Shown here one piece after another: positions 5,138 to 44,800 of a DNA stretch of 64,000 bases (its first letter is position 1; each line of letters begins with the position of its first letter). This stretch comes from Octopus bimaculoides (Eukaryota). The notes beneath the pieces are model-generated. The model was not told where the DNA came from and searched no databases. It saw only the letters and a program-made list of their open reading frames with translations. The position numbers and the translations under genes are program-made. The stretch spans positions 23,098,803 through 23,162,802 of the forward strand of contig NC_069004.1 of NCBI RefSeq assembly GCF_001194135.2, given 5' to 3'.

Positions 5138-5419
5138 TTACTTCTTTTCGAGATCTTTAAAATTTTTCATCAAGAATGTTTTTAACTGTGAAAATTCTTT
5201 ACTCTGTCCTTTCATAACTTCCACTTCATGAACAAAAGAGCTTTTATTTGATGATTCTTGTTTCAAAATTGCAATCAATTTCTGTAAATTATCCTTCAAC
5301 CAGCCCTGATGACCTGAAAACTCTTCAGAAATTTTGTTACAAAACAGCTTCTCACTGCTTGCATAATAATGCTTTAAACAACTCAACTCTTGATTCAGTT
5401 TTTCAATTTCATAGTCTTT
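5138..5419 (-). CDS. Coiled-coil gene, probable terminal exon (KDYEIEKLNQELSCLKHYYASSEK...FLMKNFKDLEKK*)
   Basis: Acceptor ttttattgtag, 94 codons open including the stop, E/K/L/Q-rich heptad-like sequence, phase 0 matching the 12696 donor, followed by AT-rich UTR-like sequence. A GT at the stop codon (AA|gtaaaa) means a further exon cannot be excluded. Confidence 0.75.
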   Translation of the reverse strand, partial: KDYEIEKLNQELSCLKHYYASSEKLFCNKISEEFSGHQGWLKDNLQKLIAILKQESSNKSSFVHEVEVMKGQSKEFSQLKTFLMKNFKDLEKK

Positions 5420-7654
5420 CTACAATAAAACAAAGTTGAGTGATAAAAGCTATAGGATTTGTAATGATGATTATAATGACAAAGTTTATCAATTATTATT
5501 ACAGAGAAGCTTTGCAGTTATATAGACAATGTTTCATGTAAATGAATGAAAAAGAATATTTGATTGATTATTAATAGGACCATTTATTTAGTAGAGTATA
5601 TATCAAGCAAATGCACGTGGCTTAGATGTTATGGTATTCAGCTCATGATGAGCTTGATTCCTAGTGGCACATTGTGTCCTTGAGTACATTACTCCAGTCT
5701 ACTCAACTGGTAAAAATGAATAGCATCTGAATTTCAAAGGATCAGCCTTGTCACATTCTGTGTCATGCTGAATCTCCCCGAGAACTATGCCTAAGGATAA
5801 ACATACCTGCTGTGGAGTGCTCAGCCACTTGCATGTTAATTTCACAAGTGGACTGCTCTGTTGATCAGATCAACTGGAGCCCTCGGCATCGTAACCAATA
5901 AATTGTTGTTACAATGTTGAAGTTACTTGTGTGTACAGATGTTTTTGTAGATGCAGTAGAATATTTGTGCCTGGTTCCATGGTTCATTGAGTATGTTAGC
6001 TTAGAATCAGCACATACTTCACCCCTCACCCCTGACTTTGGCACTACCAGGAACTGCCAAAATTGTTAGCACATAGAGCAAAATGCTTAGCAGCATTTCA
6101 GCCATCGTTATGTTCTGAGTTCAAATTCTACTGAGGTTGACTTTGCCTTTCATCCTTTGCTAGCTTAGTTTTTCTATGGCTGCTATGGAGAAAAACATAG
6201 TAAAAGGAATATATACAGCTAGAGAAGATAAGAGGTTTACCCTTGCATGCATTATTTAGTGTACTGACAGAGTTGCTATCAGTCCAGAGATGATTGACCA
6301 GAGAGAAGAAGATAGCTGCTTGCTTGTGTTTTATAACCTGCTGGTAAACAAATTCGGTCAACTAAAACAATAGGGTTCTTCTTTTACCTTTGACTTTCTT
6401 TTATCATTTTTTGTTGTTGTTGTTGTCGTGTTATGTATCAGGGATTCAGGAAAAGGGATGGCAAACCTTCAGGGAGGAGAAGATGATGCTTCTGCTAAAA
6501 TTGTGGTTTTCTGTGTATACTAGTGGTCCAATTGGCAGAAACTTCTGTACATTTTGGGATGTTGTTACAATTCTTATTCTGACGATAGCTAAATTGGCTG
6601 AAATGCACCTCTTGGAAAATCTATCTATATAACTCCAGTAAGCTGGAGTAATTGGTAGATGAAAAGGATGCAATGGAGGTACATGCATGATTCACTAGGC
6701 CTCTTCAGAGATTTACATGCCAACTGTAGGCCGAAACAGCTGTATGACTTTGTCCCTTCTTCAGTCACTAGATGTCCTTTTGAATTTTGAATTTTTAATT
6801 GTTGATATGACATAGTGTGTCATATGTGTTTGTATATTGTCTTTATTGTCCTTTTGGTTGAAAAATAAATGGATGTGGATTTGGTAGACGGAAACTGAAA
6901 GAAGCCCGTCGTATATATGTATATATATATATATATATATATATATGTATGTATGTGTTTGTGTGTCTGTGCTTGTCCCCCCAACATCGCTTGACAACCA
7001 ATGCTAGTGTGTTTATGTCCCCGTAACTTAGCGGTTCAGCAATAGAGACCGATAGAATAAGTACTAGGCTTCTAAAGAATAANNNNNNNNNNNNNNNNNN
7101 NNNNNNNNNNNNNNNNNNNNNNNNNNNNNNNNNNNNNNNNNNNNNNNNNNNNNNNNNNNNNNNNNNNNNNNNNNNNNNNNNNNNNNNNNNNNNNNNNNNN
7201 NNNNNNNNNNNNNNNNNNNNNNNNNNNNNNNNNNNNNNNNNNNNNNNNNNNNNNNNNNNNNNNNNNNNNNNNNNNNNNNNNNNNNNNNNNNNNNNNNNNN
7301 NNNNNNNNNNNNNNNNNNNNNNNNNNNNNNNNNNNNNNNNNNNNNNNNNNNNNNNNNNNNNNNNNNNNNNNNNNNNNNNNNNNNNNNNNNNNNNNNNNNN
7401 NNNNNNNNNNNNNNNNNNNNNNNNNNNNNNNNNNNNNNNNNNNNNNNNNNNNNNNNNNNNNNNNNNNNNNNNNNNNNNNNNNNNNNNNNNNNNNNNNNNN
7501 NNNNNNNNNNNNNNNNNNNNNNNNNNNNNNNNNNNNNNNNNNNNNNNNNNNNNNNNNNNNNNNNNNNNNNNNNNNNNNNNNNNNNNNNNNNNNNNNNNNN
7601 NNNNNNNNNNNNNNNNNNNNNNNNNNNNNNNNNNNNNNNNNNNNNNNNNNNNNG

Positions 7655-7905
7655 GGGGGCGGTTAAGTGGCCAGATGTTAGGGGTGATATGGTCACCGAG
7701 ATAGTCTGACAACCATGATTGGGTTCTCCTGCTTGTGTAGCATGGTGCAGAGTCCTGTTGCCAGACACAGGGTCTTCCAGCAGCCACCCTCTTGACTCAG
7801 GGTAACACTACCTCCGTCAGGCACTTAATGTAGGCCTCTGTGTTGAGTCTGAGGCCATGTGAGAAGATGAATGGAGGCAAAACGTCACCATGACTAGTGA
7901 TCACT
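7655..7905 (-). mobile_element. Tc1/mariner DD37D (maT) transposase fragment
   Basis: 'FGVITSHGDVLPPFIFSHGLRLNTEAYIKCL.EVVLP...AAGRPCVWQQDSAPCYTSRRTQSWLSD...ITPNIWP'. Confidence 0.85.
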
Positions 7906-8628
7906 CCAAACACCCTGTGCATGTGTGTGTGTGTGTGTGTGTTATGTGTGTGCGTGTGTGTTATGTGTGTGTGTGTGTTATGTGTGTATGTGTGTGTTAT
8001 GTGTGTGTGTGTGTTGTGTGTGTGTGTGTGTTGTGTGTGTGTGTGTGTGTGTNNNNNNNNNNNNNNNNNNNNNNNNNNNNNNNNNNNNNNNNNNNNNNNN
8101 NNNNNNNNNNNNNNNNNNNNNNNNNNNNNNNNNNNNNNNNNNNNNNNNNNNNNNNNNNNNNNNNNNNNNNNNNNNNNNNNNNNNNNNNNNNNNNNNNNNN
8201 NNNNNNNNNNNNNNNNNNNNNNNNNNNNNNNNNNNNNNNNNNNNNNNNNNNNNNNNNNNNNNNNNNNNNNNNNNNNNNNNNNNNNNNNNNNNNNNNNNNN
8301 NNNNNNNNNNNNNNNNNNNNNNNNNNNNNNNNNNNNNNNNNNNNNNNNNNNNNNNNNNNNNNNNNNNNNNNNNNNNNNNNNNNNNNNNNNNNNNNNNNNN
8401 NNNNNNNNNNNNNNNNNNNNNNNNNNNNNNNNNNNNNNNNNNNNNNNNNNNNNNNNNNNNNNNNNNNNNNNNNNNNNNNNNNNNNNNNNNNNNNNNNNNN
8501 NNNNNNNNNNNNNNNNNNNNNNNNNNNNNNNNNNNNNNNNNNNNNNNNNNNNNNNNNNNNNNNNNNNNNNNNNNNNNNNNNNNNNNNNNNNNNNNNNNNN
8601 NNNNNNNNNNNNNNNNNNNNNNNNNNNC

Positions 8629-8892
8629 ACAGGGGGTCCGCAAGGACAAGACAGGGGGTCTGTGGACAGCAAATACTTTTTATGGGCAATTTGATTTTAT
8701 ATGTTTTTTAATCGAAATCTTTTAATTGACAATAAACCTATTTGTTAAATACTGTTAAATAAATAAATGTAAAAATATATGTTATTTTAAGCAAATATTT
8801 ATGTATAAATTTCATAAGCGTTTATAAGGGGGTCGCTAAGGTAAAGCCTGAAATATAAAGGGGTCCGCAAGTCAAAAAGTTTGAAAACCCCT
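8629..8892. mobile_element. Right end of a hAT-type MITE (left end in gap)
   Basis: Repeated ggggtccgc subterminal motifs ending aaaagtttgaaaacccctg. Confidence 0.55.
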
Positions 8893-43100: not shown

Positions 43101-43542
43101 AAACATAGGGGTACCCTCAGCAGTACAGCAATTCTTCAACGGATTTGAGGTTAGTGGTTAGGGTCCAGCACTCAGAATTGCAAGATCGCAGTTTCAATTC
43201 CTGGACCAGGTTGGTGCAGTGTGATCGTGAGCAAAACACATCTCATGTTGCTCTACGATCACTTTGGCATCTGATGTGCAGCAAACTATGCACCTATACA
43301 GGCAATGTTGATTTGATGGAGAGAGCAAGCTAATGCACAGCACAAATATTTAATCACTATAAACATCTGTACAGGTTGTTCAGCATGAAATTGCAGAACC
43401 CTAATTTTCATTTATGACTGGAGAATCCACAATGAATCTGTGATAAAGAATGGTTTGGCAACCTGCAAAATGTAACTTAATGCCTAAACTGTTTTGAACA
43501 GCAACTTGGGCAACAATGTGGGAATAGCAATGATTTACTTAC

Positions 43543-43638
43543 ATTATATCTTGATGAATATAATGTGGCAAAACAAACGCAGAGATCATGAAACACTGTT
43601 CACTAATCACATTTCGTCCATCAATGACTGTTGTCTTC
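43543..43638 (-). CDS. Probable start exon of the coiled-coil gene (ATG at 43589: MISAFVLPHYIHQDI)
   Basis: Acceptor ccatatttacag, donor AT|gtaagt, 96 nt with one open frame; AT+T gives Ile across the junction to 37299. Confidence 0.5.
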
Positions 43639-44050
43639 CTGTAAATATGGTTATTTTCTTCTTATATAAAACATATGCAGGATTCCCCCCCCCTCCTCCT
43701 CATCATTTAACATCCGTTTTCCGAGTCGGCATGGGTTAGACAACTTGACAGGGGCTGGCATAAATGTATGTATGTCTTTTCAAACCAATCGTTTTTCCGT
43801 CATCTGCTCCCAGTTTTCAACATTCACACTAAGAGCCTTAGTTTATGTTTCGAACGTTTACCACGTTGCAACACACACACACGCACACGCACACACACAG
43901 CACAGACAAGATAGGATACGATCGATCGATAGATAGATAGATAGATAGATAGATAGATAGATAGATAGATAGATAGATCATTAGGTAGACAGACAGACAG
44001 ACAGACAGATAGATGGATAGTGGGGGAGAGGGAGAGAACATATAACTTAC

Positions 44051-44800
44051 TTTGACGTTTTAAAAGTTTGTAGAGTTCACGGGGTCAAAAAACTGGATGT
44101 TTGATTCGCGGTTTCACATTTTATCTTAGCAGTTCAATTTGTCTGATATTGTGTGTGTATGCGTGTGTGTGTGCAGTTTGTATAACAATGACTGTAAGAT
44201 ATATCTATAAAGTATCTATATATAAAAAGTATCTTTATATGTCTACGCTTTATATACTTGAGATGTCGATCTATCAGATTATTTCTTGGTCTTTTTTCTT
44301 CCAGTAAGGATTTCAGTGTTTATATTAATTCATCAGTGAGAAGAATGAATGCATATAAGTGTATGGCAGAGAGGGGGAGAGGAAAAGAGAGGAAGCGAGA
44401 GAGAGGGAGAGAGAGGAAAAGAGAGGGAGAGAGAGGAAAAGAAAGGGAGAGAGAGAGTATGTGTGTGTGAGAGAGAGAGAGAGCACATACATGTATTTGC
44501 GAAATAATTTGCTAATGTATGTGCACACGTGCTTGATGAACATACACACACAAATATATATATATATATATATATATATATATATATAAATACACGCATG
44601 TATATGTGTATAGGGAGACAGAGAGAGACAAAGAGAGACAGAAAAAGAAAGTGTTCCCTGTGCGAAGCCAGCGTTTTATCGCAGCAGACGACGTTCTTTG
44701 TCGTCTGCTGCTCTAAATGGATGAAATCTTTTTCCGCCTTCAATGGTCAACTATAATCTGAAAATTTTTAAAGGAATATGAAGAAATTATCTTTTTTTTT
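44051..44800 (-). promoter_or_regulatory. Putative promoter and non-coding first exon of the coiled-coil gene
   Basis: Strong donor AAA|gtaagt at 44050, an in-frame stop upstream, and unique CpG-retaining sequence among microsatellites. TSS not determinable. Confidence 0.4.

Follow-up and report, generated by a model that had tools for sequence, protein, structure and literature searches.

We analysed 64,000 nucleotides of the Octopus bimaculoides genome (NCBI RefSeq assembly GCF_001194135.2, contig NC_069004.1, positions 23,098,803 to 23,162,802; hereafter the window), within which a reading of the letters alone had proposed a hidden 39-kb gene for an SQ-rich coiled-coil protein, possibly a meiotic factor of the IHO1/Mer2 type (the original prediction). 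The gene is real: the minus strand from 39186 to 5142 carries the 5' 42% of the O. bimaculoides gene for XP_014775577.1, a 629-residue protein that was retrieved by a family-alignment query of the protein database and is named 'putative uncharacterized protein DDB_G0282133' in RefSeq. Translation of the spliced window matches the start of this protein at 263 of 263 residues (100% identity); the two are the same gene, with no differences between them, the window carrying residues 1-264 only. Since RefSeq already predicts it, the gene is known; its protein is uncharacterized, and what lies here is an ordinary gene. Describing it as hidden is fair with regard to the older UniProt entry A0A0L8H4M4_OCTBM (O. 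bimaculoides, 162 aa), but not with regard to RefSeq. The UniProt entry reads through intron 2 (…YPSQVAVSIIVLCTVII…; window 37188-34358) and rejoins exon 3, a mis-annotation that may explain why the gene was deemed hidden.

Exon structure of the gene

An exon model was built by mapping the O. sinensis and Argonauta homologues back to the window and then reading the junctions. It comprises seven minus-strand coding exons, in frame and with canonical AG/GT signals at all junctions (Table 1). Four of the five exons first proposed (YSDEKGES..YPSQ, TKETLEE.., (F)NQELKEF.. and KDYEIEKL.., here exons 2, 5, 6 and the beginning of exon 7) are exact matches to XP_014775577.1, and other cephalopods carry orthologues of them; their splice signals and phases agree with the original description, and all six quoted peptides were found on the minus strand. 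The exons that had been left unresolved proved to be two, exons 3 and 4. Exon 2 is conserved in O. sinensis, in Argonauta and in an ENA contig from a distant cephalopod (ERZ21867824 ctg122053l), and an exon resembling exon 5 was found in the Logan contig ERR3431203.

Both ends of the originally predicted gene had to be corrected. For its first exon, MISAFVLPHYIHQDI (43589-43543), no counterpart exists in O. sinensis or any homologue; this exon sits in sequence that is missing from O. sinensis and adjoins a repeat resembling a short interspersed nuclear element (SINE). All homologues begin MLLNHIKSKDLFS, encoded at 39186: exon 1 is 100% identical to residues 1-13 of XP_036368659.1 (O. sinensis), GAB1610972.1 (Argonauta hians) and XP_014775577.1, has an in-frame TAA four codons upstream of its ATG, and is conserved with the same phase in ctg122053l. 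It may be extended by 50 nt of 5' untranslated region, to an acceptor (...TTTTTTCAG) at 39236/39237. At the other end, the stop following KDLEKK that had been taken for the end of the protein is a TAA (5140-5138) falling inside the exon 7 donor, AA/GTAAAT; homologues read on as KDLEKK/ILSSTDD..., and in the Logan contig ERR3431203, which comes from a distant cephalopod, exon 7 has the same start, end and donor phase. The proposed ends could also belong to an alternative isoform, in which the 43589 exon comes first, or in which intron 7 is retained and translation stops at the TAA at 5138 after ~264 residues. The 43589 exon does combine an ATG with a GTAAGT donor in the right phase, and read-through of the exon 7 donor reaches TAA at once; however, that first exon lies beside a SINE-like repeat in sequence not found in O. 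sinensis, no homologue has a start of this type, and a distant cephalopod keeps both the donor of exon 7 and its phase, so that we regard such an isoform as extremely unlikely.

Nothing in the window matches residues 265-629 of the protein (58%). Collinearity between the O. sinensis locus and the window extends from ~51.8 kb to 1.8 kb and is then lost, leaving window positions 1-1816 without a counterpart. Taken together, the unmatched residues and the loss of collinearity indicate that the gene continues past the left edge of the window.

Exons 3 and 4 total 189 nt and therefore constitute an in-frame cassette. Neither exon 3 nor exon 4 is present in the Argonauta model, and the cassette is either octopus-specific or skipped. 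A minimal 203-aa model, in which exon 2 is joined to exon 5, is in frame and fits the Argonauta model; in octopus it is superseded by exons 3 and 4.

Table 1. Coding exons, long introns and intronic transposon fragments of the gene, in window coordinates.
Feature	Position	Strand	Remarks
Coding exon 1	39146..39186	-	ATG at 39186; MLLNHIKSKDLFS plus 2 nt; donor AA/GTAAGT, phase 2
Coding exon 2	37188..37299	-	(N)YSDEKGESGFSSQNSLLQNSENDNYSQDFLSEQYPSQ; SQ-rich conserved N-terminal motif; acceptor TTTTGCAG, donor CAG/GTAGCT
Coding exon 3	34358..34497	-	SMRMYQKYMCEPPLYKASSQIELSNKTIPVCNPLEHNRMKPKNQDD(R); 94% identical to XP_036368659.1 residues 53-99
Coding exon 4	32727..32775	-	PLINTIVNIMKESSNE
Coding exon 5	14846..14933	-	TKETLEEMLENINKFLSKNETLNQSNLEQ; inside helical/coiled-coil region
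Coding exon 6	12696..12778	-	(F)NQELKEFQQTMLQTVEQNKEKSEDLLK
Coding exon 7	5142..5419	-	KDYEIEKLNQ...KEFSQLKTFLMKNFKDLEK(K); non-terminal, ends at donor AA/GTAAAT
Intron 4	14934..32726	-	17.8 kb; six assembly gaps and transposon fragments
Intron 6	5420..12695	-	7.3 kb; two assembly gaps
Start of intron 7	1..5141	-	exons for residues 265-629 lie beyond the window
RVT_1 fragment	29888-30814		intron 4
PIF1/Helitron-like fragment	17218-18590		intron 4
Mos1 helix-turn-helix fragment	25209-25424		intron 4

Conservation and family extent

We performed an exhaustive HMMER search of a 1.84-billion-protein library in which exon 7 (93 aa) was the only query. Two proteins were matched, XP_036368659.1 (O. 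sinensis, 360 aa, E=3.5e-38) and GAB1610972.1 (Argonauta hians, 281 aa, E=2.7e-17), and exon 7 is internal in both. The first, named 'PFB0145c-like', is an orthologue with the same exon structure, a collinear locus and 90% identity over the 263 window residues. The second is also an orthologue, 45-64% identical depending on the alignment; it carries an expanded NSQLQ repeat, the N-terminal SQ motif having grown to about seven tandem NSQLQ units at residues 27-60. Further members of the family are the Logan fragments P0040 and P0046 (the latter from a third octopus), the divergent Logan contig ERR3431203 and the ENA contig ctg122053l, and, with exon 7 as the only part searched exhaustively, the family appears to be restricted to cephalopods.

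Between O. bimaculoides and O. sinensis, coding identity is 93.6%, as compared to about 88-90% in the flanking introns. Synonymous divergence (dS) is 0.17 and nonsynonymous divergence (dN) 0.045, giving a dN/dS of 0.26. The gene is thus constrained by purifying selection, yet it evolves fairly fast, as this ratio and the identity to Argonauta both indicate.

Synteny with NPEPL1, which had been suggested as a check, could be followed in the distant cephalopod contig ctg122053l (32.5% GC), where orthologues of exons 1 and 2 lie at 19671-19958, ~5 kb beyond the last NPEPL1 exon. The adjacency is conserved, but the gene stands on the opposite strand, which suggests a local inversion or a nested arrangement. 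No further orthologue exons were found in 20 kb of this contig, nor any DNA-level alignment to the window outside the exons.

Queried with the C-terminal chain of the original prediction (150 aa), a word-index protein search returned no match. This was a false negative, as the same search found both XP_014775577.1 and XP_036368659.1 once a family alignment was the query: the single sequence missed them despite sharing exact stretches of 20 residues with each, and negatives of this search from single sequences are unreliable for eukaryotic proteins. Used with an NPEPL1 exon as a control, the same search returned only exon-sized open reading frame (ORF) fragments and no full-length annotated proteins.

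At positions 25928-26844 of the O. sinensis locus (from CM016882.1), RefSeq splits the gene: XP_036368659.1 ends after 360 aa, and a second gene, of 232 aa, begins 30 bp further on. Both frames would be joined by a 1-nt indel within a run of A (AAGAAAAAATC, at ~26250 of the same locus), and XP_014775577.1 and the third-octopus Logan fragment read straight through the split point; the split is probably an assembly error. Both it and the intron read-through of A0A0L8H4M4 are worth fixing. Much of what this analysis yields is indeed correction, in that RefSeq holds the gene, the proposed start and stop were wrong and the assembly gaps are harmless.

Protein architecture and relation to IHO1/Mer2

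The protein has a three-part architecture. In a full-length AlphaFold2 (AF2) model, built from a five-sequence alignment, residues 1-97 are disordered, residues 98-375 are helical (278 residues, in helices spanning 98-131, 138-227 and 233-375, with a predicted local distance difference test score (pLDDT) of 50-80) and residues 376-629 are again disordered. Heptad-type periodicity is significant for 98-227, the first ~130 residues of the core (z=3-7), and both AF2 and periodicity bear out the proposed order, in which a disordered, SQ-rich N-terminus precedes a helical region that is in part a coiled coil. Exon 7 modelled alone was all helix (pLDDT 54) and uninformative. The N-terminal SQ motif, MLLNHIKS[KR]DLFS ... 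SG.[GS]SQNS ... SQDFL[ST]..YPSQ, is the best-conserved segment across distant cephalopods, whilst the C-terminal half (376-629) is N/S/Q-rich and bears a second SQ/TQ cluster, together with two basic patches, KKRR at 530 and RKRNKKNR at the C-terminal end.

SQ/TQ sites number 13, against 7.4 expected from composition-preserving shuffles (p=0.016), and they are clustered, with 4 sites in residues 26-71, 5 in 435-473 and a maximum of 5 per 50 aa (p=0.008 versus shuffles). An SQ/TQ cluster domain, a feature of ATM/ATR substrates, is defined as at least 3 S/TQ sites within 100 aa. Two clusters in this protein fall within that definition, both above shuffle expectation; such a domain is a sequence feature and not a homologous family, and any phosphorylation here is putative. 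The N-terminal sites are conserved, and expanded in Argonauta.

We are fairly confident in reading the window as holding the 5' part of the XP_014775577.1 gene, whose product would be a probably nuclear, self-associating scaffold that is not demonstrably a member of the IHO1/Mer2 family. The protein is probably nuclear because its two basic patches resemble classical nuclear-localisation signals; self-association would probably occur via the helical core, and the two disordered tails are probable docking surfaces. Docking may in turn be phospho-regulated, as clustered SQ/TQ sites are of the type phosphorylated by ATM/ATR kinases. Such a scaffold would share its general design with many chromosome, DNA-damage and centrosome proteins. 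Several points weigh against this reading. We infer the mechanism from sequence features alone, and the nuclear-localisation signals were judged by eye. Overall AF2 confidence is low (mean pLDDT 45, predicted template modelling score 0.23, five sequences in the alignment), and residues 233-375 show no consistent heptad register. Lastly, no relatives were found outside cephalopods in an exhaustive search made with exon 7 only, so that N- or C-terminal homologues elsewhere could be missed.

The same architecture could instead belong to a cytoplasmic structural coiled-coil protein, whether centrosomal, ciliary/flagellar or cytoskeletal, with no role at chromatin and with an SQ/TQ enrichment that follows from its S/N/Q-rich composition. 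The protein is indeed rich in these residues (N 12.9%, S 11.4%, Q 7.6%), and its sole marginal neighbours, all non-significant, are tropomyosin-type coils, vimentin and a sperm axonemal protein. The RefSeq names, PFB0145c-like and DDB_G0282133, carry no functional information, probably having arisen from low-complexity similarity. Against this stand the SQ/TQ sites, which are more numerous and more clustered than in composition-preserving shuffles, the conservation of the N-terminal SQ motif above all other segments in distant cephalopods, and the two basic patches, and we consider a purely cytoplasmic protein unlikely. Structural searches gave little further guidance: Foldseek with the full-length model returned nothing below E=6, and the best marginal matches in a PDB profile search were GCN4-tropomyosin coiled coils, which were non-significant. 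Pfam and PDB sequence searches with the originally quoted peptides gave no significant match and showed no trace of IHO1 or Mer2.

Whether the predicted nuclear scaffold belongs with IHO1 has to be weighed against what defines that family. In the literature, Mer2/IHO1/PRD3 proteins are defined by a weak SSM1 motif that directly precedes the coiled coil, by the coiled coil itself, which is central and tetrameric (a parallel, DNA-binding homotetramer), by a C-terminal SSM2 and, next to it, by an acidic patch that is often phosphorylated. Mouse IHO1, of 574 aa with its coil at 114-246, ends NLLCDPDFDSSDDNF (...DPDFDSSDDNF); Sordaria Mer2 is also without the acidic patch, and identity among distant members is well below 10%. 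A cephalopod orthologue would be a tetrameric coil scaffold whose N-terminal motif recruits REC114-MEI4, anchoring the double-strand break machinery to HORMAD-coated axes. The likeness in layout is genuine: a disordered N-terminus, a coiled coil and a long disordered C-terminal half, with the helical region beginning near residue 100, a periodic segment of ~130 residues (98-227) comparable with the mouse coil, a similar length (629 aa), SQ/TQ clusters and fast evolution. However, a central coiled coil with a long disordered region on either side is not specific to Mer2/IHO1/PRD3, and since this layout is common the prior for membership is low; the helical core is also longer here (278 aa).

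Sequence and profile comparisons did not reveal any similarity. No cephalopod family member matched the Pfam IHO1 profile PF15771 at E<=10, the check that had been proposed, whilst a human IHO1 sequence scored 773 bits against it as a positive control. Alignment of the cephalopod family to human IHO1 with hhalign scored 11.2 (P=0.85), a value inside the spread given by 30 shuffles. At the N-terminus, in the regions upstream of the coil where SSM1 would lie, similarity to IHO1 stayed at chance level (local alignment z=-0.6, global z about -0.3); eight tests on the first 52 residues, uncorrected, gave z between -0.6 and 2.3, and a profile of the N-terminus built from four species scored IHO1 at -2.2 bits, with 93% of shuffles at least as good. 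By-eye likenesses to human IHO1 (NDNYSQDFL/NDYSS..SQFL, KY..P.LY/KYQTKPQLF and the N-terminal N.IK..L.S) fell to chance level in five shuffle-based tests. The IHO1 coil did give the top alignment score in the panel (z=2.8), but this is little above reversed IHO1 (2.0) and 13 unrelated coiled-coil segments (up to 2.3). Vertebrate IHO1 was absent from the exhaustive HMMER search with exon 7, and a literature search found no report of a mollusc IHO1 and no paper citing these accessions.

The C-terminus differs as well. No SSM2 or acidic C-terminal patch was found, the last 30 residues having a net charge of +6 and ending GKGVRKRNKKNR. Acidic-aromatic stretches are weak and internal only (NQENENEYFNTPEY, NNDEMEYNSSIFHF), the nearest to the end, NQENENEYF, being weak and about 100 residues away from it. 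An IHO1-like acidic patch in O. sinensis, EEDEDEY, was likewise discarded, as its counterpart in O. bimaculoides is NQENENEY and the patch lies away from the C-terminus. These negatives have to be read with care: because identities within the family are well below 10%, failure of sequence searches is expected and discriminates weakly, and because Sordaria Mer2 also lacks the acidic patch, its absence is not decisive against membership.

On balance, the original prediction described the architecture correctly, but no positive evidence for membership of the IHO1/Mer2 family emerged, and the caveat that it carried, namely that the architecture would suit generic coiled-coil proteins just as well, was the correct reading. 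Membership is unsupported, and we judge a cephalopod orthologue of IHO1/Mer2/PRD3 to be very unlikely. A similarly slim chance attaches to the fuller proposal of a lophotrochozoan IHO1/Mer2, in which the SQ motif would act as a REC114-binding element, the coil would tetramerise and bridge DNA, and a basic C-terminus in place of an acidic one would reflect a rewired anchoring to the axis; if true, the Mer2 family would reach into Lophotrochozoa, and its axis-binding C-terminus would prove replaceable. As a fairly fast-evolving family, apparently restricted to cephalopods and with a sharply conserved N-terminal SQ motif, these proteins are reasonable candidates for the missing meiotic or DNA-damage scaffolds of molluscs.

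Introns, repeats and neighbouring sequence

The window is AT-rich (38% GC) and contains 11 assembly gaps as well as many transposon fragments and CA/TA microsatellites. The span of the original prediction, for which six gaps had been listed, includes eight of them, the additional ones being 26072-26849 and 31999-32251. Intron 4 holds six of the eight and intron 6 the other two, and their flanks are microsatellites or transposon fragments. As the spliced coding sequence is complete relative to RefSeq, no gap breaks the reading frame. Both introns are inflated by microsatellites and transposon fragments (Table 1), intron 4 being about 3x its length in O. sinensis (~5.6 kb) and intron 6 about 11x (648 bp).

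Several copies of a SINE-like repeat, with a translated fragment …LQSDLAEFLQLDALPNANHSESVVGAF…, occur at ~4630-4800, 31700-31960, 38350-39005, 52440-52625 and 63100-63310. One pair of them directly precedes coding exon 1, and further copies are common in the O. sinensis locus.

Upstream of the gene and on the same strand, NPEPL1-like (Peptidase_M17) exons occupy 56576-62513 (minus strand); the closest database fragments, from other cephalopods, are 95% identical. Between NPEPL1 and the gene, a mariner-type transposase fragment lies on the minus strand at 50861-51223 (Pfam Transposase_1, E=1e-22). A 45-bp minisatellite of ~18 copies (87-96% matches) extends over 47461-48284, spans a 10-N gap and gives rise, on either strand, to long ORFs that are spurious (MVPYSSRPCKRFHTL repeats).

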